Positions 617 through 61,421 of a stretch of DNA of 64,000 nucleotides are shown here, piece by piece. This stretch comes from Mytilus californianus. Lineage: Eukaryota. The DNA lies in NCBI RefSeq assembly GCF_021869535.1, contig NW_026262695.1, positions 310,001-374,000 on the forward strand, in the 5' to 3' direction. The position numbers and the translations under genes were made by a program. Every line of letters starts with the position of its first letter. The first letter of the stretch is position 1. The notes beneath the pieces are model-generated. The model had not been told where the DNA came from and did no database searches. It was given only the letters and a program-made list of their open reading frames with translations.

Positions 617-742
617 TTGACACGACATCTGTACCTAAATTTTGCCAATCTGCAAACATTTCTGATAATAAAGGGGAAAAGATGTTAGATATACATTGGC
701 AGAAATGCTCTATAAAACTAGAATGGTTTGTTTGCAAAAATG
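617..742 (+). CDS. Receptor gene 1, internal exon: C-terminal half of a C-type-lectin-like domain (VDTTSVPKFCQSANISDNKGEKMLDIHWQKCSIKLEWFVCKN)
   Basis: ttttttcattgtAG acceptor (615-616) and GTaaat donor (743). 126 bp, phase 1-1, open. The P-x-x-C...W-x-x-C...FVC pattern resembles the end of a CTLD. Paralogous to 25001-25122. Upstream exons lie outside the window. Confidence 0.8.
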
Positions 743-1129
743 GTAAATATGTTGTTATATCCTTCTATATAAATTTACTTGATGATTCTTTTTTTTTTGT
801 TATATGCAGATGCCTTTTTCTATTTGCTGAGGCATATTAAAAGAACCAGATAAAACGTCCATAATACACAACCTAAAAAATCAAAAATTCACATTACATA
901 TATACAGATATGTTCCAATCGTCGTTCCCCAAATGTAACCTACCGAATTAGACTTATCTCAGGGATTGTACTAAAATGATCAACACGACAGGTGCTGTTG
1001 AGAAACACACGAACTTTAAGGAGACGTTATGTGGACGTTGATAGGGATAGTTAGGAGTTACTCATTACCTCAATGTGACTACCGTAATACAACTTTTGTT
1101 TCGTTTTCTTTACAATATAATGATGTCGT

Positions 1130-2620
1130 GACTGCTGGAAAATGTCTACAAAATTTAAAGAAACACGTTCGAGACACAGTTGTGCTCTAACAAAGCTTTT
1201 TGCTGAGAACTAAAAATGTGCAATCTCACGACAAATTGACAGAGATGATTTTGGCTATTTTGGAAAAGGTATTTATCAGCCGACAAAAATGTCTAAACAA
1301 AAACAAAACCATACGTACTTGCGTTTTACTCCCATTAACAAACAGTTAATTTAACCCTTAAGTGGAGAGTTTTTATTCAATAAAAACCAAACAGCATCAT
1401 TTAATCCGCAGCATATGTACGCTCGTATAACAGCATTTAATATCTTCACAAGTTGCCCAAGTTATAACTTTCGAAATTAGAAGGCAACATTTACGCTTTT
1501 GAACAGAGGTATACTACTGTTGCATGTTATTAACTGGCAATTATTGGAATCGTACAACACAGCTATTCATAGCAATACCTAAAAAAACAGACGTCCAACT
1601 ACTTCAAATCACTGCTTAAAAACGAGGCTTTGACTACGTTTCGGGATTTGCACATACACATTTGAAATACAGTAAAGCTATAGATGCATCAAATGGTCAG
1701 CGATTTGGGAAAAAATAGAGAAAAACATACACAGGTGCATGAGGACAACACAGTACATTCATGCCGCAGATTTTATGACAAGTCAGAAATGCTCATTGAG
1801 GACTAGGATCAATAGGTCAGAGTCAGGAATCGTATTGTGCATTACTTATACTTATTATTCTAAACAAACATACATGCACAAAAGTAATTGATCAAACAAC
1901 CCGCCTTGAAATTCTTAAGCAGAAGAAATAAATCGTGTTTTAATTGTCTTAGCAACCACCGAGTATTGGGCGTATAAACAGTGCGGACAAAAACGCCATA
2001 CCAGTATTTGTCCCGTAAGTAAGAATCAGTTTTCGTATTCGGGTACTTCGAATTATGATTCTTATGATAACAAATCTACCTCATCAGATCAGCAAAGTGT
2101 AGCTAAAACCGCATCAGTAATGACTGTTCTACAGATTCATAAGTTCTACTCAAATCTCAAAAGCCACAATGTCTTCGAAAGCTCAAGCGAGTATGGACGC
2201 ACACATACTTTTCGATGAAGGGGTTCAGCGCTCGTTTAGGTTGAGGGTGTAGCGAGGCCACTAGAGGTAAAACCTTAAGAGGCAAAAGTAATATCCATTT
2301 CTGGGTTTGGAGGAGGTATAGAGTCAATACTCCATTTGAAAAACGCTCAAATATTTGAAAACTCGGATAACGAAAACCGCATAAATTAATGTGCTTGGTG
2401 TTCTTGAAATAATTTCACCAAAACGGACACATATTACCGAGACAACTAATTTACCATACTTGAGCGGATTGAGATTTTAAGACATGAAGGTTTCTCTGTA
2501 AATTTGTTGATAAGCGGACAGTTAATGGGATTTTATTGAGGATAAGACAAATTAAATATAATAACAGTCAAACTGCGTTCAAGTCAGAAATAGGTCTTGT
2601 GCTATCAGTTAATATCAGTG
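1130..2620 (+). mobile_element. Decayed BEL/Pao LTR retrotransposon (gag zinc knuckles plus aspartic protease) in an intron of gene 1
   Basis: Frameshifted translation gives CFNCLSNHRV (1936-1965) and KQCGQKRHTSIC (to 2011), then ILFDEGVQRSF (2205-2237) and LPYLSGLRF, in BEL/Pao order. Many stops and frameshifts. No LTRs recognised. Confidence 0.8.
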
Positions 2621-3317
2621 CTATCAGGCACAGAGATTAGACGAAGGAACGTAGTCTTTGATGCCAGGCTTAAAGATGAAGAGCATTGATGACACAAAGC
2701 CATGGCCAGGGATGTGTATTTGAACAGCATTTCAAAGCTATGGAAAAATAAGTACAAACTAACATTAATCTTCGATCTGTTTTTTAATTTTTAAATATAT
2801 ATGTCTGAAGCAATAGTTTTAAAAGAAATGCATATTCGTATAGAATGTAGAACTGGTGTCGTTGCCATGTTGGATTTTAAAATAGCAGAACTCAAATAAG
2901 TCTAGATCTTTGATAAAAAGGTTAAAACAATCTAGAGAGGAATTTTATTCATTTGTAGATAAACTTGCCGTGATGTGAGATGTTTTTGCTCCGTGTAGAA
3001 AGCTTCACTGTGATTATGAGATGAAGAACAGAAATTACAGCGCTGTGCTTCTCCTCTTTGTGTATTTATTACTGTGCATGTATTGATTTTGTGTCATGGT
3101 TGTATACCCCATATCCTTTGATTTTTGTTTTTCTATTTTCATTACAGAATAAAGAAATGATGTGTTTTTGTGTTTTATCTTATTATTTCCACTTACTTTT
3201 AACATTTTTTGTGCTATTATTTTATTTTCATTTTTGTAATGAGAGGATAGATACGTCAGATAACCTATATATAAAGTGTATTGTCAAGTAAGTTTATACA
3301 TTCTTTATTTCCTTTAG

Positions 3318-3374
3318 ATACCTCTACAGTTGAAAACACATACCACATGGAAGTAGCAACAGATGCAAATTACG
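3318..3374 (+). CDS. Receptor gene 1, stalk exon (DTSTVENTYHMEVATDANY)
   Basis: tttatttcctttAG acceptor and GTaaat donor. 57 bp, phase 1-1, open, in frame with the flanking exons. Confidence 0.7.
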
Positions 3375-5787
3375 GTAAATGTCTTGTTATATGTTTTCTC
3401 TATTTGCATATTTAGGCGCCCTTCCCCGTTTAACACATTTTTAAATAGTTGTTTCTTGCTTGTCAATGGAGATTGTTATCATTCATTCAAACGAATCTGT
3501 CGACTTCCTGAAACTGTCTGTTTAACGAATTATAATTTAGATCTTCACATATGATTTTGCAATTTCTAAATTGATAGAAGATGTAAAGACTTTAAATAAA
3601 TATCAATAGCATTCTAAAGTGATAATTTGTTGTGTTATGTCAAACATTGATATTTACTGCTTATTCGTCCAGTTATCCTGATTTCATTTCGCCTCATTGT
3701 TAAAGACAGAACATGAACATATAGTTTGGCAATTACTGAGTTGTCGAATTGGCAATCTTTAAGTTATTGTGCTTTTCAAACTCACTTTTCAACTTGAAAG
3801 ATATATCCCCGTGTACAATTTTCTTGTCATCGCAACTTCTCAGGAACTGTAAAAGATATTGTATATCATGTTTCCCTAAAATACTAGTTACTTCCTCAAC
3901 ATGATCTACTAAATTCGAACTAAGGAGATTTGGCAACATGTTATAAAAATTCCGTTTTTGTGCTCGGCATAATTGATGTGTTGATACTACTCATTCAAAG
4001 ACAGTTAACGAGACCTAGGGTCTTTTGATTTAAAATCATTGATCCCTATATAAAAAATGATCCAGGTCAGAGCTCAAGGCCATGTTTAAATTTTGACAGT
4101 TATAGAAATCGACGAAAAAGTTACCAAATTGTAAGTCGCGACTTGTCGTAACTGGAAAAAAGTTCGATCCATATGCTACCGTAACACCTATTGAAATATA
4201 TACATTTTAAAAAAAATAATCGATAAAAGTGTTGTTTAATTCCACCAGATTAAATATCTATTAAACATTGCTCGTATTCTTTGATCAAACGTCAATTAAC
4301 TGAAATTAAAAAAAATCAATAGTTAGCGCGTTAGTCTGTCGATACACATGTGGTCTGTTCAAAGTCCTAACTTGGAAAGGAATAAATAAACTAAGTGTTC
4401 GCCAGTATAGTTAAACCTTGTGACGAGAATTGCGCAAGCCCTGAAATATAATTAAACAAAATCAAGTTCAAGTAAAGTAATTAGAGCAAAATAAAGGACC
4501 AAATTAAACCAACTGCATACACAACAAATCAATAAAACATAAATTCCTTGGTTTCATAGACAAAAAAGGAAAACTTGTAAAGGAGGATTCAATGATGCTA
4601 TTATAGGGTAGGGTGTTTCAAGCCTTGCACGTTTCAAGCAAGACACAACATTATTTTAAATACAAGATAAACTTGTTGCAAGGAGCAGAAACGAGACATA
4701 AGCCCTCCCTCTTTCTTCTTCGCTTGTTCCTAGATATCATATTCTATGCATTAAGTAAAAAAAAACTGCCCCCACTACTGCGTGTCTAGTTTGGTGAGAA
4801 GGGAGGGGATGTGTTAATCTGTTTCTTTAGGTACAATATGTGTTAAATATGTGCAATTTGACGTCTTACATACATTCAATCCAGCAAGGTAGCATCAAAG
4901 AAATAATTCAACTAATAAATGAAAGAATCAATAATTAATCAATCAATCAATCGATAACGCAATCAATCAATTCTATTAACAAAACCAATCATCGATTATT
5001 GAATGTGAAACTTGTGAAACCTGATAATATGCCAGTATGCAAAATTTTGATCAATAAATCAACCCTTCATTCGAACAAGACACCAAGACACATACACACC
5101 TATTAACTATCAAAACAAACCAACCAACCAATTGATATGCATCTAAAGTAAGTTGTTTGGTTGTTTTGTACATCTAACAAAACCAACGACCCCAAAAAAT
5201 AAGTTATGAAAATGCAGAAAGACCTCAAAATTACAAAAAAACAATTGATTTTTAATTGTAATTTTATCTGTTTTTTCAGTGGATTTTTATCGAATTCTCC
5301 GCCTAAATGTTATTTCTCTGCATTGCAGTTTTGTTATGTAGGGGTAAAAAATAGAACCATTTAAATAAAATTTGTAGTTTTAAGTTGTCTAATTCATTTT
5401 TGAATTAAAGCTTTGATTTAAAGTTTGGCCTGACTCCTTTTTTTGTTTTTTTTTTCTTCAGTTCTTTAAAGATGTATGAATGTTTCAAACTTCCAATAAT
5501 TCTCGATTTGCCCATTATTACATTTAAAAAGGCTACCAAATATTTGTTGTAACTCTAATATGATTCATAAACAAAGGCTCTGTTTGATCTGAAATATATA
5601 TTCTCTTTCACAATTTGTTTTTTTCTGTAGTTCTCTTTCATGCTAACAGACGATTTTTATTAAATAATAATTTGCATTTACCATTTCCAAATAGTTCCTT
5701 AAATGTAGCATTGAAATAAAAAGTGTATTTCGCAATTAAATCAGAATTATGTGTTTCTGTACTTTTTTTTTACTATTTTTGATCCAG

Positions 5788-5863
5788 GGGCCATTGTAGG
5801 TGGATCTGTCGGAGTTGTCATTGTTTTACTGATAGGTGTTACTGTTATTCTGTGCAAAGTGAG
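5788..5863 (+). CDS. Receptor gene 1, transmembrane exon (GAIVGGSVGVVIVLLIGVTVILCKVR)
   Basis: Poly-T tract with ccAG acceptor and GTaaaa donor. 76 bp, phase 1-2. Hydrophobic run of about 22 residues followed by K/R. Same length and phase as the paralogous exon 27521-27596. Confidence 0.88.
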
Positions 5864-6303
5864 GTAAAATCTATACGATATAAATACAAATAGATACAAG
5901 GTTAACCTCAAAGTGAAAGCAATTTCTGATACAAATCTATGCAATGAAATAAACAGAAGTTTAATAATTTCTATGACTTAGTATCTAACTGATATGCACC
6001 TGACACTTTGAGGGTTCACCTGAGGTAAAAAGGGGCTTATCCTCATATTTTTTACTTAAAAATTAAACAAATGTATATATACGAGAAAGATTCTTAGATC
6101 ATGAAGGGAAGCAATTGATATCCTTAAATTGACATAGTTGGTACATATTCGATTTTGTTCGGTCTGGCAATCTATAATTGCTAATAGAAATCTTAAATTG
6201 AAAACATATGCAAGTAAGATAAGTTAAAAAATGTTCTATGTCACGCTCTTTGTTTGAATGTTTGTTGTGTTTCAAATTACACGGATTAAATATTGTTTTG
6301 TAG

Positions 6304-6772
6304 ACTAATTGGAATTTTTAAAAGTAATAATTCAGCGAATATGGCAACAATAGTTTTTACGAAATCAGTGCGTGATGACAAAACCAATCTTGGAGTACAG
6401 ACGCAACAGCAAGTCCATGAAAGTTATGGTTTGGTAAATCAAGTTCCTGAGAAAAACAACAAAACAAACGATTTATATACACATGTGCAGAAGGGAAAAC
6501 GTACGGAGGATACTTATACAGAGAGTTCAAATGGAGAGTATGATCATTTACATAACTTTGGTGAACGAAAACCAAAAGCTGGTGAAAATACCTACGATAG
6601 CAATGCAGGAGTTCGAAACTGTAATGATCCCACCTATGACACTGCTACAAGTTCTACTAGAGTAGATATGGATAATACGTACGATCATTCTTTTTCAAAA
6701 TTGAAAGCTTATTCAGAATATGACGTTTCAGATTCATGTATGCAAATCGATACAACAAACTATAGCGTATAA
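6304..6772 (+). CDS. Receptor gene 1, terminal exon: tyrosine-rich cytoplasmic tail
   Basis: ttgttttgtAG acceptor (6302-6303). Phase 2 matches the TM exon. Open to TAA at 6770-6772 (ORF 6293-6772). Ten Tyr, including YGLV, YTHV, YDHL, YDSN, YDTA, YDHS. AATAAA at 6878-6883. Confidence 0.88.
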
Positions 6773-7007
6773 GGTCAGGCTTGTTAACTATATTTGGACC
6801 TTAGCTACACCCCAGAAAACCTGATAATATTATTTTGTTCTTATATTCATTAATTCGTTCAAAAATATTCTCAATCGAATAAATAGATGACAACGGAAAA
6901 TTTCTATTTCTCATATATACAATGTGTTTCTGTTTCCTCGTGTGTGACCTCACCAAATGCCACTTATCAACATACATGTTCTTTCCAATGACAAAAGTGG
7001 ATCAAAT

Positions 7008-7121
7008 AGATATAAGAAGATGTGGTATGAGTGCCAATGAGACAACTCTCCATCCGAGTCAAAATTTATAAAAGTAAACCATTATAGGTCAAAGTACGGT
7101 CTCCAACATGAAGCCTTGGCT
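7008..7121 (+). repeat. Abundant interspersed repeat (agatataagaagatgtggtatgagtgccaatgagacaactctccat family)
   Basis: Near-identical copy at 58862-59021. Diverged copies at about 34220-34370, 49915-50075 and 54346-54506, and inverted at about 45810-45845. Confidence 0.75.
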
Positions 7122-8060
7122 GTTTCCCATTCTGGATTACTTGAGTCTAATTTTAGATTCTACATTAAGTTTCTGTTGCTTTTGAGTTCAGTGTTGTATT
7201 TCTCAATACTTTATTGTTATGTGTCTTGTCTGTCTATGTTTAATCGGTGTAGGTCTTTACCATTTAAACTAATTTCTAAATCTTTTCAAACATTATCATA
7301 CTGTCTTCCTTTATGTTTAGCCATTAGTCTGGATGTTTGGCGATTTTGGTTAAGGTCTAAAGGTAAGACAAGAGTCATCATACAATGATGTGAAGCCTTG
7401 TTGCCGAAAAATCCTAATCATATTTAAGCATTATTTCAATACGGATGAACTGATAACCCTTCCACATCAGTCTGTGTAGTTGTTGGTGATGTCCTCGGAT
7501 ATATTTCTTTTGCCTTTGCGTAGATTATCTACCTTCGACACATTGTTCTTTTTTATTTTCCCTGCGAGTTGTTAAGGTGTAACTCTTTAGATAATTCCCT
7601 TTCGGCTGCTTTAACACCAAGGAATAATGTCCGAAGTATAAAACAACTAACACCATTTTATGGCTATTGTTAGTTTACTTATTACGTGCAGCTACACAGA
7701 AAACAATTATTAACCATATCGGTGGTATTGATAAAGCGATTAAAATTCAGTTGCAGCCAGTGACTTTACAAGTTTGAATTGCTTCCTTGCGAATCTAAAG
7801 AATGTCTTTTTTGTGATGTAACGCGTACTGTTACGGAGTGCTATATGTAACTTTAATTCTGGTACATATACACTACCTCAATGACATCCCTTTATTTGTG
7901 ACTAATATCAACACATTGTAGCAACCTCTCGGCTACAAATGGGTTGCAATTTAAATATCTATTTTATATATATAAATGAACATATGGTACATATCGGTAC
8001 AACGGGCACAGAGGGCTTTTAACTTTATATGTTCATAAAAGAAAATCGTATAATAAAAAT

Positions 8061-8124
8061 TGGTAGCCGCGCGGTTAATATCAATAAGTTAGAGGTAAAG
8101 ACTTGTCGGTTAAGGTTCGAATCC
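8061..8124 (+). repeat. tRNA-derived Pol III promoter-like segment (SINE head)
   Basis: A-box-like tagccgcgcgg and B-box ggttcgaatcc (8114-8124). No convincing cloverleaf. A similar B-box (gagttcgaatcccgg) occurs at about 19829. Confidence 0.35.
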
Positions 8125-8838
8125 TAGTTTTCTCTTTGTCATCCCTTTTTGTTAGTTTTTCCGTTTTTCTTATTTTTTATGTTACTGTGGATTTATTTGT
8201 AATAAAAGCGGGTTTTCCCGTTTATTATAAGATTATTATTGCTATTTCAGGTATATGAAAAGAAAAGTATTACATTTAATTTGTCCATTTTTGTTTTATA
8301 AATGTAGTATGATTTCATCCGTTTTACTATCATTACAAATGTGTTTTTTTCTCGCAAATCCCCATGCGAGTAAATCATGATGTGCCTTTAATAAGGTTTC
8401 TTGCTAGAAATTTCGCTAACATTCTTATTATATATACTTAGAAATAAGTTTGAACATGTCTTATTTTGTAAATTACGGATAATATTGAGATGCATAATAA
8501 TTCAAAGACAGACGTATTATGTTATATTTGTATTTATCTAACCAATTAATTGTGAGCTTTATTTATCAATTCATCGTTGAAAATGATAACAGGGTTATTT
8601 AAACTCACTTGCAATACCTTCTACTTAAGAAAAGTATTTCGTTGTGAAAAAACACCATCACAATTTTTTAAAAGAGAGGGGAAAGATACCAAAAGGACAT
8701 TCAAATTAATAAGTCGAACATAAACTGACAACCCCATGGCTAAAAAACAAAAGACAAACAGACAAATAATAGTACACAAAACAAAACATAGAAAATTGAA
8801 GACTGAGCAACAAGAACTTACTTTTAAGTTACAGACAA

Positions 8839-8923
8839 AATGGATAAGCGTTGATTCATGAAAAACAAAACATTTGCCATTGGGGCTCATTGGGGATTTT
8901 TCATGAATCGACGCTTATCCATT
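8839..8923. repeat. Short hairpin, about 27-bp stem and 31-nt loop
   Basis: aatggataagcgttgattcatgaaaaa (8839-8865) pairs with tttttcatgaatcgacgcttatccatt (8897-8923), with one T-G mismatch. Confidence 0.85.
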
Positions 8924-9784
8924 GTATCTATAATACTTTATTGATAACAAGCAAATGTTCTGATAAGTAATACATTTACTGCAAGAAATAAGTCGAAAAC
9001 TGAACATGCCTTAAAAATTTATAATTCGGTCTTTTAAAAGCTCTTTAAATCAAAATAGGTTAACTAATGAAAATTCTACAAAACACTACTTAGAAAACCT
9101 AAGATCGAGTAACACGGACACCTTCAAATTCCGTTGGTTGTCGCAGGTGCTCCGAAGGATAAATAACATCTATAATTTCTTTCTTAAGGAAATAAATTAC
9201 AAATACCTTGGCCGATATGAATGACTATTATGTTCAGGGTTAATTCTCTAAGTTAACTGTTTAAATCAATAATGTCTAGACATTTGTAACACAAAAGGGC
9301 CTAATAACTACCCCAAACTTATCACCTACAGTAACATGTTTTATACAGTTAAAGTTATTCTGACAGTGTACTCGTGGTAAAACTTATATCATTCAAGCAC
9401 TTTCTATTGTGCCTGTTCAGTGTTTCTGTCGTTCTGTTGTTTTCCTCTTATAGTTGATGTGTTTCCCTTGGTTTTGTTTTGTGACCCAGATTTGTTTTCA
9501 CTTAATCGATTTAGTACTATTGAGCAGTGGTATACTACTATTGCCTTTATCTCAAGGCGGGAATTTCTACATTATTTGTGTTATGTTAAATCTCAGTATT
9601 TTTTTGTTATTTTAAAACTTAAGTGTTAATGACAGATTTTGATTGTGCCTGTTGAACATGGTGAAGGTATTCACAACTTTTATTGAGACGATTTGTATAC
9701 CAACCTGTCGACAGCTCTAAGTACTATGTGTGTCGATTCGATTCAAATAAGCCGACATTGGACTGTACGAAAAAAAAACCAGTT

Positions 9785-12650
9785 GAATTTATAAATATGA
9801 CAATATCAATGATAATTCATGTAAAGGCAATGTTTCCTCCATATTCATGGCTCTAATCCCGTTTCCATATTTGGCAATACGTATTGTCCTTTTTGATTAA
9901 ATTGGGTCTTCTCTATTTCTAATCGGTTTTGAATTTGATATTATGGACTCGGGCAACCCCGAAGAGACATTAATTGCTGAAATGTGCATCTGAATTAGTA
10001 ACATTAGTTCTATCTAAAATACTTGAACTTACATTAAAAAACGGATGTTACGAATATGTAAACTAGCTAAAATATAAATCTGTTCATCTTTAAAATGTGT
10101 AAACTTTGTCATTCGTTATGCTACAATGTACAATAAAAAAGCATGATATTTATGGGCTTGCTTTTACTATAATAAAATCCTTGATAGAGCGCTAATGCTT
10201 ACAAGACAGCTATTGTTACTAGTGTCATAATGGTAAAGTTGAAGTTTTTCCTCCAAAACTTTAACGGGCGACGTCATCATTTGATTGACATTTACAAATT
10301 ATCTGTGTCGTAGATAACCACTGATAGATTCCACTTGTCTTGACCATAATCAATCCTCTTTTACTTGATTTTGATGTTATCAATGCAACCTATCATCGTA
10401 ATTTTACATCCAATGAGTAACATAATAGATGTCACTACTGTAGCAGGAATTATATACCTTTAAGGATGACCAGCGTTCAATCCCAGTTTCCATTAGGTTT
10501 GAGATGCTCAGTCGTTACCTTTTTATATTTGTATATTTTTTATTTAATGTGCATTACAGGTTAAAGATACCGAAAAATTATGTTAGGGAAACAGTAAATC
10601 GAAATCAAGATAAATCTTTACACGGAGGGACAACAAAGATTGATATTTTTAATGATTGCCATCGTCCAACTCGTTTTTATGTTTCGAGTTTATAAAGTTA
10701 TGAATTGTTTTATAAGTCAGGTTACAAATGTTATTTTGCACAGTTTACCGTAGACGATCTTATTATGTTTAGACTCTTTTAACTATTGTGCCTCACATCG
10801 AAAAACATACACAACGTTAACCACGGATGTGTTTCAGTTGCTGTAGCCACAATTCAGACATGATTTCCTCTAGTGTGACCAATTAATCATAACCGAATTT
10901 GTACTTGCCATGAACACACGACGGATGGAACATGAGGAACAAGATCTGCTCGCTCCTTCCACCTGAGGTCATCATCACCTGTTGGTTAAGTTCATGTTGT
11001 TCAATCTTTATTTTTCTATGTCTATGTTTTGTAGACATTTGTCTTATCTTTTCCTCTGTTAATAACACGGTGTTATCGGTTTTATCAACTCATATTTTTT
11101 GGGTTTTATCTCTTTGGTATATTTGTCTCCTTTTAATGGACTTTGCCAACAAACACATTTCTTGTATAAACGATTAAATACTTCACATAAATTAAAAATG
11201 TTTAATGCGTTTATTAATTTCGTTTTTTTAAATACAGCAGTAAATTCAGTAACTATTGCGTGCATTATTTTTTATTGAGACTTTATATTTTGGTCTCGAG
11301 GATCTCTGAAGATAAACATTTATTGTCCAAATGCACATGAAGGTCATAATAGCTGTAACATAGACTACGTGAAAAGTATGCACAGACGCTGGCTTAATGA
11401 TGTGTACTCTATACTTTTATATTTGGTTTATTTATTCTTACATTACTTCATCAGCGTTGATGTTCTCTCTTTTGTTCATATCCTTTGACATGTGACCATG
11501 AATGAAATTCTTATGCCGAAAATTCATACAGTAATTTCTGCCAAGTTATCTAAATTTTATCTCGATGGGTCACGTGTTGAATCATCATTCATGTTTATTG
11601 CTTCTGTATTTTCTGTGACAAAATCGGTCATTTGGTGGCAATATCTGCTTGTGAATATGGTGTTATTAAAATGCAAATACATTATACAAGAAAAACTTAA
11701 TCTATGATTCCCCAAGATATTTGTAAAAACCCAACAATCCGTCGTCATTTCGTAGTTTATCACATGTAATACCTGTCACAAGAATGCTATTTATAACAAG
11801 ATGTTGTCTAGTTATCGACTGCATGAATAGTGCAGTAAGTAGAACACGAAATCTTTATCGTTTTGTCATGAAGCAAAATGCTTCATAGAAAGTTTGCATT
11901 GTCGTCGTTTTTTTTTTTTTCATTTGGCCACAACCTATTGTCTATCTTTTTTTGCACATAGTATTTCCCATTTGGTATATTTAAGCATATATGCGAATAT
12001 AAGTTCATATGTGGGCGCATGTAAAAAGAAGATCATTGTTGTTTCTTAAGACAGTAATTCAGGTCATATTTGATTTGAAAAAGGGTATATAAGAACAGCA
12101 AACGAGATGCCGTCGATAACTAAAAACCGTCGATGGAACTGTAACCATGGGCAACATATTAATCTAATTTGTTTAAGTAAAATAGGCATAAATAAGATAA
12201 TAGATACTATCGTGGAGTATAATACTTATTGAAGTTCATACAGTGTTAAGGCGTAGGTATATAATACAATTTAATATGAAAAATGTTAAAATGATACTGA
12301 GAATGTTTTTGTTTTTGAGAAGAAAAATGTTAATCAAGTATCATTGATATCTAGAGAAGTTTAATTTCAGAAACAATACAAACTATTCTGTTCTGGTAGT
12401 TTCATTATTTCTTCTAAACGCTTGAACTTGTATGACGGCACTTTCGATTCGTTTTTTACTTGTTTTTCCTCACAGGCGCATACATTCTTTTATACTTGTC
12501 CTGCGTTCAATTTTATTTTATTACCTTTATGTGCCTTCTGTGAATGTAAATAGGCATGCACCGTAAGGATATTTTGACCGTGTTCAGTAATGGTGAGGAA
12601 AAAATACGAACAGTGATAATCATTCAATAATTAAATTTGCCATTATATAA
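9785..12650 (+). repeat. Non-coding segmental duplication block, copy A (collinear with 30005-33310)
   Basis: Ordered alignable blocks, e.g. 11385-11710 vs 32030-32360 and 12430-12640 vs 33140-33310. Roughly 75-80% identity by eye. Confidence 0.8.
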
Positions 12651-12864
12651 AGTTACATCAGTTATCAATTTTCGAAAACTTCTTGCATAATCAAATTATC
12701 TGGTGTCTCAACATTTAAAAGTTATAATGTACTCTTATCGACTTTGGTCATTTGAATATGTTTTTGGAATGTTGTAACGTCGTTTATTTTTCTAAATTTA
12801 ACTTCATCACGGTGTGTTTGGATTGTTATGAAGGTCACAAATTTGTGTTGTTTAACTCAGTAAA

Positions 12865-13504
12865 CAAAAGGTGAATATTAAAACGCCCCGGAAGAACGAC
12901 GTCACAGAGTTGCCCGGCTTCAATGGTGTCGCACACATGTAATATTGAACCGTTCAACATGATTGAATGTTTTTTTTTTTTGATGAATCAAATTTTTTTT
13001 TTGAAATTTTGTGATGGAAGGGCGCATGTTTACCGTCGCTGTGGAGAATGGTTGTCTGATCATGGTGGTAGTTAGATGGAATCCGTTATACTGGCTGCAC
13101 ATGATTGAAAGTCGGTGCTAATAATCTCAACGCTGTTCGTTAGACAAGCTATAACAGCCAGTAGTTCTGCCGTTCCCTCGTAGGATTTCAATCATGTGTT
13201 TCAACGAGACAATGTTCGTTGTCATGTTGCTCAATTGACATGAATTTTCTAAATTTCACCACATCCGGGTTCTTTCAGGGCCAGCATTGTCGACCGACTT
13301 CAACCCTATTGAGTACTTGTGCGATGAACTTGACCTTCGTATTTACAGCCGCAAAAATCCACTGGCAACACTTCATCAGCTCAGCAGGGTACTTGTTGCC
13401 GAATGAACAAATATCTCCAAGCCTTAATCATGAACATCGTTGGTTCTATGCGCCGTATGTGATAATCTGCCATCAATGCTAGAAGAGGACATACCTTATA
13501 TTGA
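12865..13504 (+). mobile_element. Decayed Tc1/mariner (Tc1-type DDE) transposase
   Basis: RRHRVARLQWCRTHV...VFFFDESNF...DGRAHVYRR, then QRDNVRCHVA and PALSTDFNPIEYLCDEL, ending GHTLY* at 13504. These match the Tc1 FSDESRF, QQDNA and SPDLNPIE motifs. Stops and frameshifts present. TIRs not identified. Confidence 0.88.
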
Positions 13505-14324
13505 TTACCAAACTCTTTATCTCTATTAAATTATGATGTTTTTAAACAGACACAATAGGCATTTGATGAATGTTGTTGACATTTTTGATTCTTCAAAGAG
13601 GTTGGATTTTGAAATATTTATTCAGCGTTATTAAACAATGTTGTTATCTTATAATTTATAGGACATGAAGCTAGTGTAACTGTATTATTTTGATTTGTAA
13701 ATGTGAAAATTCAATTTAATGAAAGATAAAAAAAACCAAGTTAGGAGCCTCTGGCCTTTGTTAGTCTAGTATTTTTTTTTTAATTCTAGTTCATTTATAT
13801 GTTTTGGAGTTCAGTGTGACGTCCATTTTCACGGAACTAGTACACAATTTTATTTAGGGGCAAGCTGAGGACCACCTCCGGGTGCGGGATTTTCTTGCTG
13901 CGTTGAAGATCCATTGGTGGTCTTCGGCTGTTGTCTGTTCTTTGGTCGGGTTGTTGACATATTCCCCATTTCCATTCTCAATTTTATTACACTTATTATA
14001 TAATTAGCATAGGCAACACATCAGATGTTGTGACAGTTGAATTGTCCTATAACAAAGAAGATGATCAAGGTTAATTAGAATGTCAAAATCTATATCACTA
14101 AGTCCATAGCGATCCAAGGATGTCACTTTAAAGTCAATATCTGTTGTGCTTTTTAATAGCGTGTAACAAGTAGTTTTGCACAGTACGTATCGATTACCGA
14201 CTATCTGCTGAAATATCAATTTACCAAGCTCTACAAATGTTTTGTCCTGTAAATTCGTGAGATAACACTACAAAAGTCCAAAAGTCTGAAAAAACCAGTT
14301 TTCGTCTCGATTTGCATGAATTTT

Positions 14325-14765
14325 TACTCGACATTCTCTTTTCGTATGAAATTTTTGTAAAAATTCTCGACAAAGTCTAAATTTGTCTGAAATAAGTATC
14401 TTGATTCTCGACATTGGTCTCGACTATCTGTATTAATACTTGATTATTCTCGACATACGTCCTGACAGTATTAACATTGTCGACACTTTCTTGACAGTCT
14501 GAAAAGTGTCTTGATTTGTCTCGACCTATTCTCGACTGTCTTTGATTTGTCTGGATAAGTCTCGACATATTCTTGACATTCTTAATGATGTCTGAATATG
14601 TCTCGACACATTCTCTACATTCTTAATGATGTATGAATATGTCTCGACACATTCTTGATGGTCTTAATGATGTCTTAATATTGTCTCGACACATTCTCAA
14701 CAGTTTAAATTTCATCTGAATTGTGTATCGACACATTCTTGACAGTCTAAACACTTTCTTGAGCT
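14325..14765 (+). repeat. Degenerate minisatellite, about 39-42-bp unit (tgtctcgacacattcttgacattcttaatgatgtctgaata)
   Basis: Recurrent tctcgaca core. The best adjacent copies are at about 14559-14725. Confidence 0.75.
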
Positions 14766-15201
14766 GTTTTATATTCATTTCTATTGTGGCTTAACTAAAC
14801 CTAGAAGAATTAAAATACAATGACACAATGTAAATTATAAAAACATCAATTTGGTACAATTATTGTTTATTAACCATATAAACAATGATAAACATTGAAT
14901 ATTATGCATGTAAAATGAAATATGTCTACAGTATGATTGATTTCAATTATTAAGCACTTATTTATTATATTTATAAATTAACATTTGTATTTGTAACATT
15001 TTTATACCAATATTTGTTTTTATCAAAATATTTACATATAAACATTTTTAATACAAAAATGTTTAATTGCCAAAATTTTGTTTTAGTAGTAATAAGTGTA
15101 ACTTGAAATAACAGTTAATTCTTGAAAGAGAAATAAAGCAAAATATATATCCTGTACAATGGTCGTGATTTGTAAAGCTCAGAAAATAGGATTCGAAATG
15201 C

Positions 15202-15622
15202 GGCGTTTTACGTTTCCGCATTTTGGCACTACGTTTCCGCATTTTTATAGTACTCTTTTACGTATTGTTTTTACATTGATAATACTGACCTAAAACAAAT
15301 AAGGACATGAAATTGAGTGTCCAAAAAATAAATCAAACATATGCAAATGAATATAAAAGATTTAACCAAATACGGAATTCAACACATATGGGGTGACTTT
15401 CAACATGGTGACTTTTGAAAAGTACTCACAATGTTAAATCTGAATATAATCTACCTGTTGAAGGAATTAATAAAATACAAATTAAGAAAAAATACTATAA
15501 TAAATTCAAGTCTTATATATCATTATTACCATTTTTTTACAGGTGAAATACAGGTAAAAATGCGGAAAGGTGGTATCTATTTATTTTGGACTTTTGCTAA
15601 AAATGCGGAAACGTAATACGCC
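15202..15622. mobile_element. MITE-like element with 23-bp TIRs
   Basis: ggcgttttacgtttccgcatttt (15202-15224) vs the reverse complement of 15600-15622, one mismatch. The core motif is repeated subterminally at both ends. No TSD seen. Confidence 0.7.
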
Positions 15623-15881
15623 CTTCGTAATGAATATCTCATAGAAAATAGCAAACTTGACTTCCATTTAAAAAAAATCTCTTAACGCTTCTGTAAAACC
15701 TTTTATTCACTTATTTTTTCTCTTTTGAACAATTCTATCTATATACAGCCAGAACATACATAACGAAGGAATTTTTGTACCTTTCCAAGTATACAAAAAG
15801 AACTATTTCTCTACTTCATATAAAATATATACATGTATAAATGCATATCTAAACTTTTAAAAACCATATTTTATTGTCTTC

Positions 15882-16427
15882 TTAAGCAAATACAACTGGA
15901 TTGCTTATTTTATCAAAGCTAAATATATGTGTGTCAATTTTTCTGTCATCAGTGACCAAGAATAATCCAGATTGTTCCGGAATAGGAAACATCTCCAATT
16001 TTACCCACATGATAGCTTTATCTTGATGGTTGTGAAGGAAAATTTTATTAATTGTTTCAAAACGAAGGTTTGTCCTATGCAAAACACTAATGCAATAGTC
16101 ATGTGAGCGTGATGCCGTTGTCTGATGATCTGTTGTTGAAAAGAAAATTTGTCGTTTTAACTCCACATCCTGTCTATGACTGACTTTAAGATATGTGACC
16201 ACTGGGTCTATGTCAAATAACTCATAACTTAGGTTATATATACTATTATAATTGTCTCGTAGAATCGATAGTCCGTCACTTTGCAACATGAATCTTTTTG
16301 TAGATGATGTAGATATATCTTGATGGTGAATGGAATTAACTTTTTCTGCCATGCGACACAAACTTGTTTGTCTGCTGCAATTTAAAATTTCACCGCTCAA
16401 AATGTTGTGGGAGCTCCAATCATATAT
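15882..16427 (-). CDS. Orphan protein-coding exon (181 open codons from the acceptor; 156 aa from ATG 16352, MAEKVNSIHHQD...NPVVFA)
   Basis: Strong minus-strand acceptor ttaatttttatttcAG (+ 16428-16429). Open frame to TAA at 15882. AATAAA on the minus strand at 15870-15875 and 15702-15707. Longest non-low-complexity ORF in the window. No family recognised. Confidence 0.55.
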   Translation of the reverse strand: MYDWSSHNILSGEILNCSRQTSLCRMAEKVNSIHHQDISTSSTKRFMLQSDGLSILRDNYNSIYNLSYELFDIDPVVTYLKVSHRQDVELKRQIFFSTTDHQTTASRSHDYCISVLHRTNLRFETINKIFLHNHQDKAIMWVKLEMFPIPEQSGLFLVTDDRKIDTHIFSFDKISNPVVFA

Positions 16428-18922: not shown

Positions 18923-18972
18923 CATGATCAAAAGGTGATACAGATTTACAGTCTTAATCAAAATTTAATTGT
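18923..18972 (-). other. Candidate 50-nt non-coding (5'UTR) exon of the orphan gene
   Basis: ttttttcttttcAG acceptor and catg|GTaatt donor on the minus strand. Stops in all three frames. Confidence 0.35.
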
Positions 18973-46088: not shown

Positions 46089-46191
46089 ATGATGATTCAG
46101 ATACGTTTTTCCCGTATGCTGTTATCATCAATGGTTGCCGTTGACATGCTCATTTTATATGCTTTAATTGTGATAATTTTGATACATTATG
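46089..46191 (+). CDS. Receptor gene 3, exon 1: signal peptide (…MVAVDMLILYALIVIILIHY)
   Basis: In-frame ATGs at 46089, 46116, 46131 and 46146 (true start uncertain). Hydrophobic core. Consensus donor g|GTAAGT at 46192, phase 1. Confidence 0.72.
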
Positions 46192-47991: not shown

Positions 47992-48183
47992 TAAAATCAG
48001 CGCATGAATTATTGCATACTGATTCGAATGGCATAACGTGGGATCGCGCTCAAGATGAATGTAAACCTAATGGCCTAGAAAGCCGAGAAGAATACCTCAG
48101 GGAAAGTGGCATTGCTAATGAACTCGAATTTTGGATAGGAAAGGCTATTTACAGAGTACCAACACGATGGATTGAGATAATTG
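47992..48183 (+). CDS. Receptor gene 3, exon 2: N-terminal half of a C-type-lectin-like domain (…TWDRAQDECKP…LEFWIGKAIYRVPTRWIEII)
   Basis: tatttctttAG acceptor and GTaact donor. 192 bp, phase 1-1, open. W-x-x-A-x-x-x-C and FWIG CTLD motifs. Confidence 0.85.
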
Positions 48184-51400: not shown

Positions 51401-52917
51401 CTAGTATTCAGCAGCAGTATCATATGATATAACGTTACAAGCTGTATGCATCAGAAGCAGTGATCTGGGTTTTTGTTCATCAGGAACGCTCAAACCCAAA
51501 ACTATTAGAGCTAAGGATGTATTAATACTACAGTACTGGAAAAAAAAACTTACCTCATTTGGAGTTGCAACGTTAGTTTCTAATAATTTCGAAATTGACC
51601 AACAGACTATTAAAATAAAGTGTGTTATAACAATGTATAAAGCATGTAGTACTAACTACTGAGCTAATGATATTCTCGTGGACAAGTATTCAGTTTCTAA
51701 AAAAGTCCAATTTCACATCAAGTCACTTTTGCCGGAAGAATTTGGACAGTATTATCATATTATGTACATAACTTGTATCAAGGGCAAACATCTATTCTGA
51801 TTTTATTGGTATTTGAAATTGATGCAAATCAAATCACATTTCATAAAAGTTTTAGGAACGCTTATTTAACTTAAATCATTATTCTTATATTGTAAAATAC
51901 CGTAACCAGTATATCTTTTTATTTTATAACGAACTATAAATTTATAATTCGATTTATGTCAGAATATTTCCTTCTGGGTGTATTTGTTTTTTTTTTTTTT
52001 TTCATTTTTCTTGGTTTTTTTTATTCGAAATAAAGGGGAAATTCGACAATGTTCATTGTTATAATAAAACGTTTCTAGTATAGACTAGTGTCATTTGTAA
52101 TGTATTTAAACAAAATAATACCAAAGAAGGATGACGATACCAAGTGGGCAATACAACCCATAGGGCTAATAAGAACAGATCGCACCCTGACCAAAGAAAT
52201 GAGACACAAAGCAAAACGATACTTAACCAAACACAATTTGAAGACAACGAACGTAACACGAACTCCACAAACACAGGTGCTGAACTCATATACATTGGAA
52301 GGGTAGTCAGTTCACGATCTCTCATGTAAAATATCAATTCGAATTGATATCAAGCTGTACGATTACAGGCATTGTGAGTTTTTCCTAAAAGGTGTTTGTA
52401 AAAAAAAGTAGTAAATTAAAGTTTCAAAAGCCAACCTCTACATGTATATTTTGACAAATCTCTTCTAAATGTCATAAAATTTTGACGTCAGTTTCACTTA
52501 ATTTTCAACTGTTAACACCAGTCGAAAAAATACATACAGAAAACTAAAGATAGAAAAATCGGGGACAATATCAGATGTTTTGAAAGGATCAACGAATAGT
52601 CGAGACTGTTTCGTTAAAGAACATGTGCCGTTGTTAAACATACTAGAAGTGAACAGATTTTTTTATTCAAATTGAAATCTAATAAGTCTACATACTTCTC
52701 TTAAAGGGTGTTTTCAAATTGAGGACGATCATATCCGCTCATTTCCTGCAGTGGCATCGATTGGATATTGTCAACAAAAATGTTATTCTGAAAACATGGG
52801 AAGTTATTTTGGTTACAAACAGCGTATTCGGAATGTAAGTTTAACTCTTAAGAAAATTCTCTTTTGATATTTAAGTAATTTCGTATTTTATAAAGTGTGA
52901 CTATGTCACATTCAGAT
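48487..52917 (+). repeat. Tandem duplication unit 1 (about 4.43 kb)
   Basis: Identical ORF translations at offsets of 4430-4431. Junction ttcaga-t-tgacgaaag at 52911-52926. Confidence 0.95.
52707..52834 (+). CDS. Receptor gene 3, exon 3 copy A: WSC-like N-half (GCFQIEDDHIRSFPAVASIGYCQQKCYSENMGSYFGYKQRIRN)
   Basis: cttctcttaaAG acceptor and GTAAGT donor. 128 bp, phase 1-0. GCF...C-x3-C...YFG WSC signature. Confidence 0.8.
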
Positions 52918-55900: not shown

Positions 55901-57346
55901 TTTTTGTTCATCAGGAACGCTCAAACCCAAAACTATTAGAGCTAAGGATGTATTAATACTACAGTACTGGAAAAAAAACTTACCTCATTTGGAGTTGCAA
56001 CGTTAGTTTCTAATAATTTCGAAATTGACCAACAGACTATTAAAATAAAGTGTGTTATAACAATGTATAAAGCATGTAGTACTAACTACTGAGCTAATGA
56101 TATTCTCGTGGACAAGTATTCAGTTTCTAAAAAAGTCCAATTTCACATCAAGTCACTTTTGCCGGAAGAATTTGGACAGTATTATCATATTATGTACATA
56201 ACTTGTATCAAGGGCAAACATCTATTCTGATTTTATTGGTATTTGAAATTGATGCAAATCAAATCACATTTCATAAAAGTTTTAGGAACGCTTATTTAAC
56301 TTAAATCATTATTCTTATATTGTAAAATACCGTAACCAGTATATCTTTTTATTTTATAACGAACTATAAATTTATAATTCGATTTATGTCAGAATATTTC
56401 CTTCTGGGTGTATTTGTTTTTTTTTTTTTTTTCATTTTTCTTGGTTTTTTTTATTCGAAATAAAGGGGAAATTCGACAATGTTCATTGTTATAATAAAAC
56501 GTTTCTAGTATAGACTAGTGTCATTTGTAATGTATTTAAACAAAATAATACCAAAGAAGGATGACGATACCAAGTGGGCAATACAACCCATAGGGCTAAT
56601 AAGAACAGATCGCACCCTGACCAAAGAAATGAGACACAAAGCAAAACGATACTTAACCAAACACAATTTGAAGACAACGAACGTAACACGAACTCCACAA
56701 ACACAGGTGCTGAACTCATATACATTGGAAGGGTAGTCAGTTCACGATCTCTCATGTAAAATATCAATTCGAATTGATATCAAGCTGTACGATTACAGGC
56801 ATTGTGAGTTTTTCCTAAAAGGTGTTTGTAAAAAAAAGTAGTAAATTAAAGTTTCAAAAGCCAACCTCTACATGTATATTTTGACAAATCTCTTCTAAAT
56901 GTCATAAAATTTTGACGTCAGTTTCACTTAATTTTCAACTGTTAACACCAGTCGAAAAAATACATACAGAAAACTAAAGATAGAAAAATCGGGGACAATA
57001 TCAGATGTTTTGAAAGGATCAACGAATAGTCGAGACTGTTTCGTTAAAGAACATGTGCCGTTGTTAAACATACTAGAAGTGAACAGATTTTTTTATTCAA
57101 ATTGAAATCTAATAAGTCTACATACTTCTCTTAAAGGGTGTTTTCAAATTGAGGACGATCATATCCGCTCATTTCCTGCAGTGGCATCGATTGGATATTG
57201 TCAACAAAAATGTTATTCTGAAAACATGGGAAGTTATTTTGGTTACAAACAGCGTATTCGGAATGTAAGTTTAACTCTTAAGAAAATTCTCTTTTGATAT
57301 TTAAGTAATTTCGTATTTTATAAAGTGTGACTATGTCACATTCAGA
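52918..57346 (+). repeat. Tandem duplication unit 2 (about 4.43 kb)
   Basis: About 10 differences from unit 1 within 48620-48805/53050-53236. Elsewhere only a 1-nt homopolymer difference was spotted by eye. Confidence 0.95.
57137..57264 (+). CDS. Receptor gene 3, exon 3 copy B (identical to 52707-52834)
   Basis: Same sequence and splice sites, offset 4430. Confidence 0.75.
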
Positions 57347-57477: not shown

Positions 57478-57580
57478 ACGAAAACACACAATTGTGTCTG
57501 CCTTCCTAATAGAATCGATGCAATACAAGAACAAGACATACAGTATTGTCTCAATTCAACACATTTCTTTGTTTATAGAG
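57478..57580 (+). CDS. Receptor gene 3, exon 4: WSC-like C-half (TKTHNCVCLPNRIDAIQEQDIQYCLNSTHFFVYR)
   Basis: tttcttttacAG acceptor and GTaatt donor. 103 bp, phase 0-1. C-x-C...C...VY WSC signature, in frame with exon 3. Confidence 0.85.
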
Positions 57581-59019: not shown

Positions 59020-59125
59020 GTTAACCTGGAAGTTAAAAATGAAAAAAATAATGTATTGGGTTTGCCATAGAGCCTTGTTGCAAATTGTCCTTCAGTATCA
59101 ATTTTCAGATATAGGAGTAAATATG
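59020..59125 (-). mobile_element. Small Penelope-like RT fragment
   Basis: LLYLKIDTEGQFATRLYGK resembles the LEIDxEGRLxTKLYDK segment seen in the other copies. Confidence 0.5.
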
Positions 59126-60680
59126 ACTTTCTAGTCTCTGTCAACCTTATAACCAATCTAACTTTCTAAATTAAGGAGTACTTTCCTCGCGTATGATTTT
59201 TTCTTATATTTACACATATGAAAGGGTAGAGGCCAATTCATCATCTGCCAAAGTCACCTTTGAATTTTATGTTCATGTTGTATTGAATATGACAAATTTT
59301 TGTTAACTATAACAAAATTACAAACGCTAGTAGTCACATGTTTTTATCATTTTTTCGCAAATGTTCTCATCAGGAATACCCATAACTGTTAGAAATTTTG
59401 TGTAGTAGAAACATATTTTAAAGTAAATTTGAAATATCATTGAAATTATTGTAGCTTGAATGTTAATAAACGGCTTAAAACTACTGAACAAAAAACAAAC
59501 TGTTTTAATTCCTTCAAACATTTCTGAAACAATTATAGGTTATAAATCTTGAAAATCACAAACTTATATTGAATTTGATCGTTTTAAATTTACAAAAAAA
59601 TTTCAAACAATTCGGCTAACAGACATTAGAACATTTTTCTTTTGGGATTTTCTACAAAACCTTTTACAGTCTCTTTTGCATTGTTTTTGTGTGTTTAAGT
59701 GAAAATTATATGGTCCCAACAATGACTGTGGTTAAGTTTATAAGGAAATTCAGTACCTCCCCAAGACTACTAAATGCCCATCTCATCGGTCGAGCATACG
59801 CTAAAAAGTGAAATAGCAAAACTCCAAGGAAAGTTCAAAACGGAATGTTCCTTATCAAATGGAAAAACCAAAAGCTGAAGCACTTCAAACGAATGGAAAA
59901 CATGTGTCATATTCCTGACTCGTTGTAGGCATTTTCTTATGTAGAAATATGCAGATTAAACCTGGTGTTATAGCTAGCTAAACCTCTATCTTGTATGACA
60001 GTCGCATACAATTCCATTATATAGACAACAATGTATGAACAAAACAAACAGACATAAAAGGTCAAAATGTCAAAAATTAGAGGAATATTGTGTTATAATC
60101 TTAATCACTATAAAAACAAACAACTATGTCAACAAAGAAAAACAAAATGTCATATAGGCACTCTATAGAAAAAGCACATACGTAAAAAAGAAAGACAAGA
60201 ATACAGAAATTGACCATAGCACAATAACACAATGGCAGGATGTATAAATGCCGAGCCAAGCCAAAAGGATATTACTTGACTAGAAAAAATGGACTAAACA
60301 GTATACATAAAGATTAACAATATACAACATTTTTTTGTACAAAGACAAATAAAAAGAACAATTTAACATGCAATTAAAATGATAAACAACGGCAGTACTT
60401 ACAATCCATACCACAAGACCATCATGTATAATTTGTGAAGTTGATACGGAATATTGTGATATCTTCCTATGAGAACGAGACTGTCATACAAGTGAGAGGT
60501 TTAGCTAGCTGTAAAAGCAGGTTTAATCCACCATTTTCAACATTTGTAAGGAAATGCCTGTACCAAGTTAGGAATATGACGGTTGTTTCCCATTATGTGT
60601 TTGAACTTTTGATTTTGCCATTTGATAAGGGACTTTCCGATTTTCCTTGGAGTTAGGTATTTTTATTATTTCACTTTTTA

Positions 60681-60985
60681 GTCATAACCCTGGTTCGTCA
60701 ACTTTCTACTCAGCCACTGGTGACGTTTTATATAGTCAGAGTAGCAGCTGCAAGCTCTCGAATACCGAATGAGTTGCGAAATGTATATCCCATATGCAGG
60801 TGAAGTTGGTATATTGCTCGTAAGGTTGGGGAAATTGATAATTTTAAAATGAAATCGTCTCGTTTGTCATACATTCTGAATGTGAATTTAAATTATCTGA
60901 ATTCCTTAATCTTCTGTCAGTGTCTGAAGGATCTCTGACTCATATGAAAATAAGAAGAGGTCGACAAGGAGAGGCACACAGATCA
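60681..60985 (-). mobile_element. Penelope-like RT fragment
   Basis: CVPLLVDLFLFSYESE, then MYDKRDDF.FKIINFPNLTSNIPTSPAYGIYISQLIRYSRACSCYSDYIKRHQWLSRKLTNQGY. Confidence 0.85.
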
Positions 60986-61280
60986 GTTGAATTAAATGTT
61001 ATGACAGTCTGTCACTATCTAAGTACTATGTTTATGCCAATATATTTGTTAGAATTAGGTTGTACTAGGATAGATGTTCATATCATTTCTTCTAGAATAT
61101 TGCCGTGTGTATTCTCTGCTTTTTCTATAAAATTATTTATTCTATAGTTAATATTGTCGTGTTTCCGTTTCTTTGTCGATATTCTCATGTATTCAGTTTT
61201 TTTTTATTTCAATTTTGTATATTTGAAGTGTGTAATTACAAAAAGCAGGGTTTAGAATTATACTTTTTGGTTACTTTAAG

Positions 61281-61421
61281 ATTATAATGGTTCAGTCCGT
61301 CAATCATCAGACCCTGGAAACTGCACAACAATTTGTTGCGGTAGTTGTAATGGGGTAAACGGTAATCACTTGGAAGGAAGATGTTGCAGTTCAGTGGACA
61401 TTCCTATAGTTGGTAGATGTG
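61281..61421 (+). CDS. Receptor gene 3, exon 5: Cys-rich CTL C-half-like (DYNGSVRQSSDPGNCTTICCGSCNGVNGNHLEGRCCSSVDIPIVGRC)
   Basis: ttactttaAG acceptor and GTaata donor. 141 bp, phase 1-1, open. P-x-x-C-x19/20-C-x10-C spacing is similar to exons 617-742 and 25001-25122. Confidence 0.8.

Follow-up and report, generated by a model that had tools for sequence, protein, structure and literature searches.

A same-strand array of Mytilus genes for type I membrane proteins with a lectin-like head and a multi-tyrosine tail: candidate signalling receptors

Bivalves depend on innate immunity and carry huge lectin expansions, and to our knowledge very few of their membrane-anchored, signalling-competent receptors have been characterised. 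The closest described systems are CgCLec-TM1 and CgCLec-HTM of the oyster Crassostrea (Magallana) gigas, transmembrane lectins reported to signal through a hemi-immunoreceptor tyrosine-based activation motif (hemITAM) to Syk, ERK and IL-17; the C-terminal position of the transmembrane (TM) helix in CgCLec-HTM has been called unusual in reviews (PMC13027682, PMC12842671). Architectures that combine a C-type lectin domain with a WSC domain and are specific to bivalves have also been reported in a survey of bivalve C-type lectins (PMC10140915). Here, we describe a window of 64,000 nucleotides of Mytilus californianus (scaffold C115:310001-374000, plus strand), which is free of N runs and has a G+C content of about 31%; coordinates below 1 or above 64000 refer to its flanks. 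The window is a slice of a Mytilus-specific, same-strand array belonging to a family of about 50 clustered genes for type I single-pass membrane proteins, and holds all or part of three of them (genes 1 to 3). With moderate confidence, we read the products as receptors that would join a lectin-like and WSC-like head to a phosphotyrosine-signalling tail, genes 1 and 3 being working copies and gene 2 a dead one.

The Mytilus family shares with CgCLec-HTM and CgCLec-TM1, likewise membrane proteins of a bivalve, a lectin-like head and a tail containing tyrosine motifs, and, as in CgCLec-HTM, its TM helix lies on the C-terminal side. Compared by description only, the oyster proteins have one ordinary carbohydrate-recognition domain (CRD) and one hemITAM, whereas the Mytilus head is interrupted by a WSC/PAN-like insert, lacks sugar and calcium motifs and is invisible to Pfam, and the tail holds eight or nine conserved tyrosines. 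The predicted fold also resembles that of vertebrate natural killer (NK) and myeloid receptors such as Dectin-1, CLEC-2, NKR-P1, LLT1, NKp80 and KLRG1 (Z 9.5-10.1 to the last three), which share with the Mytilus family a clustered multigene organisation, heads often devoid of calcium sites and tyrosine motifs in the tail. However, these are type II proteins with a short N-terminal tail and one motif, while the Mytilus proteins, of type I, begin with a signal peptide and have a long multi-tyrosine tail at the C terminus. Neither Pfam nor a run of the family profile against the PDB detected any sequence similarity between the two groups. By language-model features and shape, the nearest entries are molluscan ESM Atlas clusters that likewise combine lectin-like and apple-like modules (Lectin_C with PAN/apple); these are recognised by Pfam, measure 226-236 amino acids and, with scores of about 0.8, are leads only. 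In the ESM Atlas, the Mytilus family forms a separate cluster of 60 members from Mollusca without a Pfam assignment; unlike the clusters just named, its proteins also have the TM helix and the tail.

Two of the genes can be followed from signal peptide to tail when the 30 kb fetched on each side of the window are included, in which exons were sought by tblastn with Mytilus homologues and with a hidden Markov model (HMM) of the family. This extension, proposed in an earlier note on the same DNA, recovered six upstream exons of gene 1 as well as the downstream exons of gene 3. Gene 1 consists of the following parts:

window -8651 to -125, plus strand: exons 1-6, located by tblastn with Mytilus homologues and by the family HMM; in order, the signal peptide (61 nt), the N-half, two WSC-like exons, a Cys-rich exon and the 'WTNVFREE' exon
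617-742, plus strand: exon 7, lectin-like C-terminal strands (C-half), 126 nt, phase 1-1, AG/GT sites, HMM E 1e-12; three conserved cysteines, the end reading ..WFVCKN
3318-3374, plus strand: exon 8, short stalk, 57 nt, phase 1-1, located by RNA joints and by tblastn to the stalk of P0002 and P0001
5788-5863, plus strand: exon 9, TM helix, 76 nt, phase 1-2, RNA joint 5863|6304; a 23-residue hydrophobic stretch, then K-V-R
6304-6772, plus strand: exon 10, cytoplasmic tail with conserved Tyr 1-8, 61-67% identity to Mytilus proteins (phmmer)

Together, these ten exons form a complete gene of 501 codons plus stop, with canonical AG/GT sites, open frames and phases that chain from one exon to the next. 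The stop (6770-6772) takes the place of conserved Tyr 9, four codons short of the usual family end. Gene 1 is intact and is predicted to be a working copy.

Splicing of gene 1 is directly visible in public reads mapped to 610-6609, which give three GT..AG joints, 742|3318, 3374|5788 and 5863|6304. A raw RNA-seq run shows the joints, as do two sets of transcript-like contigs; they are absent from X2, a DNA-like run from the same species, and 742|3318 was found in the RNA runs X4, X1 and X5. RNA contigs cover 6302-6609 of the tail, and first mates map to the minus strand at gene 1, which in most stranded libraries indicates plus-strand RNA. The in-window exons are thus spliced exactly as in the gene model, in the order and phases given in the earlier note (C-half 1-1, stalk 1-1, 76-bp TM exon 1-2, Tyr tail). 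Because the joints flank 3318-3374 in RNA, this segment is a real stalk exon. A stalk pair suggested by tblastx at 1358-1405 and 27255-27302 was rejected, since RNA puts the stalk of gene 1 at 3318-3374; the likeness between the two segments is intronic similarity remaining from duplication. A further joint links 764 to 5236, the two sides being separated by about 32 letters of other sequence, in X2 and in one or two RNA reads. It is unreliable, its shorter side being 21 letters long, and could represent an allele or paralogue that lacks 4.5 kb of intron along with the stalk exon.

Gene 3 starts within the window and extends about 10 kb beyond its end. Its exons were placed with the help of P0055, a Mytilus edulis homologue:

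46131-46191, plus strand: exon 1, start codon with signal peptide, 61 nt, matched by tblastn to P0055 residues 1-20
47992-48183, plus strand: exon 2, lectin-like N-half (a helix with a Cys, then the EFWIG strand), 192 nt, phase 1-1, HMM E 2e-19, 75% identity to P0055
48487-52920 and 52918-57351, strand not applicable: direct tandem duplication in intron 2, 4.4 kb, two copies at 99.7% identity (self-BLAST)
52707-52834, plus strand: exon 3, first WSC/PAN-like half, 128 nt, phase 1-0, from homologue alignment and the family HMM
57137-57264, plus strand: second, identical copy of exon 3, from the 4.4-kb tandem duplication
57478-57580, plus strand: exon 4, second WSC/PAN-like half, 103 nt, phase 0-1, 68% identity to P0055 residues 128-161
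61281-61421, plus strand: exon 5, Cys-rich beta-hairpin, 141 nt, phase 1-1, 67% identity to P0055 residues 157-210
64468-64659, plus strand: exon 6, 'WTNVFREE', downstream flank
65943-66065, plus strand: exon 7, true lectin-like C-half, downstream flank, outside the window
72268-72343, plus strand: TM exon, 76 nt, downstream flank
73461-73947, plus strand: tail exon with all conserved tyrosine motifs, downstream flank

The gene comprises 500 codons in phase-consistent exons, all bounded by AG/GT sites, and splicing of exon 7 straight to the TM exon, with no stalk between them, keeps the frame; a weak stalk candidate at window 71100-71198 (E 0.76) was left out of the model. Since exon 3 is 128 nt long and runs from phase 1 to phase 0, inclusion of both copies shifts the frame, and a productive mRNA can therefore use a single copy only. 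The 4.4-kb duplication itself may have arisen very recently or may be an artefact of the assembly. Gene 3, too, is intact and is predicted to be a working copy.

With the flanks included, genes 1 and 3 follow the same exon plan, and their phases match throughout: a 61-nt signal peptide, the N-half, two WSC-like exons, the Cys-rich exon, 'WTNVFREE', the C-half, the stalk where present, a 76-nt TM exon and the tyrosine tail. Exon 1 is identical in length and phase in the two genes, and family HMM positions 132-174 match exon 5 in gene 3 as well as in gene 1. This shared plan makes gene 3 a full member of the family, a membership that the earlier note could only deduce and had made dependent on a TM exon and a tyrosine tail downstream; both are present, at 72268-72343 and 73461-73947. 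The signal peptide, the N-half and the WSC part that it assigned to gene 3 stand, but 61281-61421, which it took for the C-half, is the Cys-rich exon 5, the C-half lying at 65943-66065.

In the tail, eight tyrosine columns show 100% conservation across 14 full-length members that represent several subfamilies. A ninth column is conserved in 92%, and a further tyrosine close to the membrane, in S-Y-G-L, occurs in 79%. The motifs read Y-A-x-V, D-T-Y-x-E, G-E-Y-D-x-L, N-x-Y-D-S, P-T-Y-D, Y-D-H-S and E-Y-D, with Y-D-x-A for the ninth, over a tail of about 155-165 residues. Identity of the tail between subfamilies is only 25-35%, and the invariance of the tyrosines despite this divergence argues that the tyrosines themselves are functional. 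Tails of the same subfamily are 65-93% identical, against 53-63% for the heads, and five Mytilus species share the same invariant cysteines and tyrosines. The TM helix is followed by basic residues, which puts the tail on the cytoplasmic side. The obvious reading is that its tyrosines would be phosphorylated and would then serve as docking sites for SH2 proteins.

Some members have another kind of tail. In P0036, P0040 and the C-terminal end of P0009 it is short, ends just past conserved Tyr 2 and carries motifs of the type (I/S/A)-T-Y-E-D-L, resembling the immunoreceptor tyrosine-based inhibitory motif (ITIM), together with P-V-Y-E-E-V. An exon of this short-tail type, L003, lies upstream at C115:280061-280279 (window -29940..-29721) and is split over two frames. 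Long-tail and short-tail members may be paired receptors.

The nature of the head was addressed by structure prediction on P0041:9-285 from M. galloprovincialis, the closest full-length homologue of gene 1. An AlphaFold2 model built on a family alignment of 24 sequences has a predicted local distance difference test (pLDDT) score of 88.2 and a predicted template modelling (pTM) score of 0.82, and the best 50 rows of two structure comparisons are all C-type lectin-like domains (CTLDs), among them tetranectin (Z 10.3), eosinophil major basic protein (10.2), LLT1 (10.1) and NKp80 (10.0) in the first, which was exhaustive, and mannose-receptor CRD4 (10.6) in the second. The best matches, at Z 10.3-10.6, align 90-93 residues with a root-mean-square deviation of 2.7-3.1. 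In all rows but one, which starts at residue 2, the aligned span runs over model residues 1-277, although about 90 residues, almost the whole target domain, are aligned; ESM Atlas lectin clusters align to the model in the same end-to-end manner. The simplest reading is that the first 65 or so and the last 35 or so residues of the ectodomain would form one lectin-like domain, with about 175 residues inserted between them. C21, F44-W45-x-G47, C247, C267 and C276 are nearly invariant in a 24-member alignment (A2) and present in the exons of genes 1 and 3; the helix-1 cysteine, the WIGL-type strand and the three C-terminal cysteines of a CTLD are thus all retained. The head would accordingly be assigned to the CTLD fold, 'lectin-like' denoting a predicted fold and not an activity.

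When the insert is modelled alone (pLDDT 79), its residues 1-75 best match WSC domains, namely those of Kremen1 (Z 5.8), fungal glyoxal oxidase (Z 5.4) and yeast Wsc1 (Z 4.7, 24% identity); none reaches a Z of 8, under which the tool advises caution. The rows that follow are PAN/apple modules; together, the WSC and PAN/apple domains account for rows 1-10 and for most of the first 28, and Foldseek gives E of about 0.1 with a probability of 0.82-0.90. The insert differs from these domains in having six conserved cysteines where they have eight. Polycystin-1 carries a WSC and a C-type lectin domain in one protein; in the Mytilus head the WSC-like module is apparently nested inside the lectin-like domain and not placed beside it. 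Residues 117-170 of the insert match the N-halves of lectin or Link domains weakly (Z 2.1-2.5), and hhalign did not support an internal duplication of two lectin-like N-halves (E 0.14, probability 0.4%). Of the labels given to the head in the earlier note, the lectin-like one is supported for the predicted fold by the homologue model and the WSC one tentatively by the insert model; neither is supported by Pfam. Scans of the six frames with regular expressions for WIGL and W-x-D-x-x-C returned nothing useful. Pfam matches to FAM163, Syndecan and TM_ErbB1 around the TM helix were dismissed as noise, and a 39-aa venom peptide (E 0.11), the sole PDB match of the family profile, was rejected as chance.

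The two genes belong to a much larger set. Tail exons were sought in the whole genome (1.65 Gb, 175 contigs) with two family proteins and in a separate search of the flanks. At least 24 loci were found on C115 and at least 24 on C35:29.18-31.77 Mb, at least 48 in total, all but one on the plus strand; the paralogue count that the earlier note had called for is provisional and inflated, because the window block recurs on C115. No tail-exon locus was found on any other contig in the whole-genome search with the two family proteins, and several of the matches elsewhere in the genome carry stops within the matched stretch, as judged from translated matches only. The recurring block lies at C115:921149-988727, 611-621 kb downstream, with 91-99% identity and indels; a large segmental duplication would account for it, as would a second haplotype assembled in series. 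Upstream of gene 1, at about window -18636 to -10376, lie pieces of another family member (L004/L005), with a weak C-half-like match containing a stop and a TM exon at -10456..-10376, which indicates that the array continues in this direction.

Named homologues, whether from word-based or exhaustive sequence searches, all come from Mytilus (M. californianus, M. coruscus, M. edulis, M. galloprovincialis and M. trossulus). They are labelled uncharacterised, unnamed or hypothetical throughout, in line with the description of the family as uncharacterised in the earlier note, save for a few automatic domain names, UniProt calling some members 'C-type lectin domain-containing' or 'WSC domain-containing'. 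No RefSeq protein was found for gene 1 or gene 3, in records of the M. californianus genome that may be incompletely covered, and our literature search found no paper on a Mytilus family of lectin-like receptors with tyrosine tails. The bacterial Type IX secretion system (T9SS) protein P0005, with 28 matched stretches, was rejected as a homologue, its match being compositional. One family member of 547 aa is encoded on a 1931-bp Logan contig, a length that only a cDNA-like record free of introns could have. The family is at least partly expressed.

Gene 2, which lies between the two intact genes, retains three recognisable parts:

25001-25122, plus strand: relic of the C-half exon, 122 nt against 126 in gene 1; the HMM matches the second half only (25029-25118)
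27521-27596, plus strand: relic of the TM exon, 76 nt, phase 1-2
29107-29523, plus strand: relic of the tail reading frame, a Tyr-rich paralogue of the gene 1 tail

It had been presented as a regular gene model that shares exon order and phases with gene 1. The 76-nt TM exon in phase 1-2 and the Tyr-rich tail bear this out in part, but the rest of the comparison does not hold. In the C-half exon, two conserved halves lie in different frames, and there are stops in all three frames. At the tail acceptor position CG replaces the AG of genes 1 and 3, and the nearest AG gives the wrong phase. The tail stop at 29521-29523 falls just ahead of conserved Tyr 8, and conserved motifs resume in frame beyond it. 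No stalk exon was found by tblastn, and no upstream (5') exons were found in 7000-25000 by the family HMM or tblastn. Gene 2 is thus a dead, decayed partial 3' duplicate. The DNA that follows the two tails in genes 1 and 2 is collinear and 72-83% similar (9400-13970 versus 30000-35350), which shows that the duplicated unit extended beyond the 3' end of the gene; the coding tails themselves match at 67% of nucleotides. The decay of gene 2, and the stops in several other tail-exon matches, fit the proposal in the earlier note that the array evolves by birth and death.

Altogether, these findings lead to a model in which the product of an intact gene would start with a signal peptide, followed by a composite head, in some members a short stalk, a single TM helix and the multi-tyrosine tail. 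In the head, the WSC/PAN-like module would be nested, together with a Cys-rich hairpin and a helical sub-domain, where ordinary C-type lectins hold the calcium and sugar loop. The mechanism is borrowed from what is reported for the oyster CgCLec-HTM and CgCLec-TM1. The variable head would bind a ligand, possibly a glycan or protein from a microbial or other foreign surface. Clustering would then allow a Src-type kinase to phosphorylate the tail tyrosines, including that of the hemITAM-like G-E-Y-D-x-L, and SH2 proteins (a Syk-type kinase or adaptors) would dock and activate the cell. The other seven or eight conserved tyrosines lie outside the definition of a hemITAM. That the array has an immune role is a guess by analogy.

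Several observations count against this model. For the head, Pfam Lectin_C (PF00059) matches no exon piece at E up to 10, Pfam WSC (PF01822) matches neither the exon pieces nor the full-length homologues, and both profiles miss the full-length P0015, P0023, P0001, P0002, P0030, P0041 and P0055; the family profile retrieves no lectin or WSC chain from the PDB sequences. The fold was taken from P0041 and not from the proteins of the window, and its split topology was deduced from the first and last aligned residues only, not from contacts in the model. Neither the 24-member alignment nor gene 1 exon 7 shows the calcium and sugar motifs EPN/QPD and WND; the WND position in the C-half reads W-Q-K-C, R-R-N-C or similar, and the long-loop region is replaced by the insert. 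For the tail, the Y-D-x-x motifs match no textbook SH2 consensus, and the tyrosine of G-E-Y-D-x-L, present in 14 of 14 members, is followed at +3 by L in 12 and by F or S in the other two; the gene 2 equivalent has F at this position. Finally, RNA depth at gene 1 is very low, with a few reads in about 6% of one run.

Tyrosine motifs beneath a lectin-like head would also suit endocytic or scavenger receptors, in which the head captures the ligand and the tail provides a Y-x-x-hydrophobic sorting signal for clathrin adaptors, as in the mannose receptor and DEC-205. Tyr 2 lies in such a motif, Y-A-x-V, in 13 of the 14 members (Y-C-E-I in P0023), Tyr 4 lies in Y-D-x-L in 12, and the best fold matches include the lectin-like domains of mannose receptor CRD4, DEC-205 and PLA2R. 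These matches are, however, no better than those to NK-type receptors, and sorting takes one or two motifs, whereas the family keeps eight or nine invariant tyrosines over about 120 residues, mostly in an acidic Y-D context; we regard an endocytic role as rather unlikely. The proteins might instead mediate cell-cell contact, self/non-self recognition or adhesion, for instance between gametes, in larval settlement or in allorecognition, a polymorphic array serving to diversify partner specificity. The confinement of the family to one genus in huge same-strand arrays, a head that evolves faster than the tail, and a lectin-like fold without sugar-binding residues, as in the protein-binding NK-cell receptors, all agree with this idea. 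Diversification driven by pathogens would fit the same features equally well, and we hold a recognition or adhesion role to be quite improbable.

A less interesting explanation is that the array is mostly decaying and that the RNA reflects low-level pseudogene transcription without function. The dead gene 2, the nonsense codon of gene 1 at conserved Tyr 9, the stops in several other tail-exon matches and the low RNA depth are what such decay would produce. Against it, frames are still open and splice sites canonical across the 9-10 exons (15-28 kb) of genes 1 and 3, the invariant cysteines and tyrosines are common to five Mytilus species, and splicing is precise, so that wholesale decay seems very improbable. 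A more ambitious extension of the receptor model would make the two Mytilus arrays an invertebrate counterpart of the NK-gene and leukocyte-receptor complexes, that is, fast-evolving, copy-number-variable paired receptors with one type of head and two types of tail. The long, nine-tyrosine tail would be activating, and the short tail, with its ITIM-like (I/S)-x-Y-E-D-L, inhibitory. Such receptors could be used in the recognition of non-self, of pathogens and even of transmissible cancer. We put this forward as an unlikely, speculative proposal.

The DNA between the genes holds other features. A piece of a C1q domain lies on the minus strand at 33824-34042, between genes 2 and 3 (Pfam C1q, E 1.5e-8), and near it is a 1.65-kb inverted repeat of 95% identity (38904-40554 and 41712-43332). 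The spacer between genes 1 and 2 contains a tandem array at 17026-17896, with units of about 155-160 bp and 77-84% identity between copies.

The surprise of this locus is limited, as expansions of lectin-type receptors are expected in bivalves and members of the family are already annotated as 'uncharacterized'. Nevertheless, counts of immune genes that go by known domains are likely to miss some 50 loci, as Pfam does not recognise the family. The nested module would be a clear case of a domain within the C-type lectin-like fold. If the tail is a phosphotyrosine platform, signalling from ligand to kinase in mussel haemocytes would become open to experiment.

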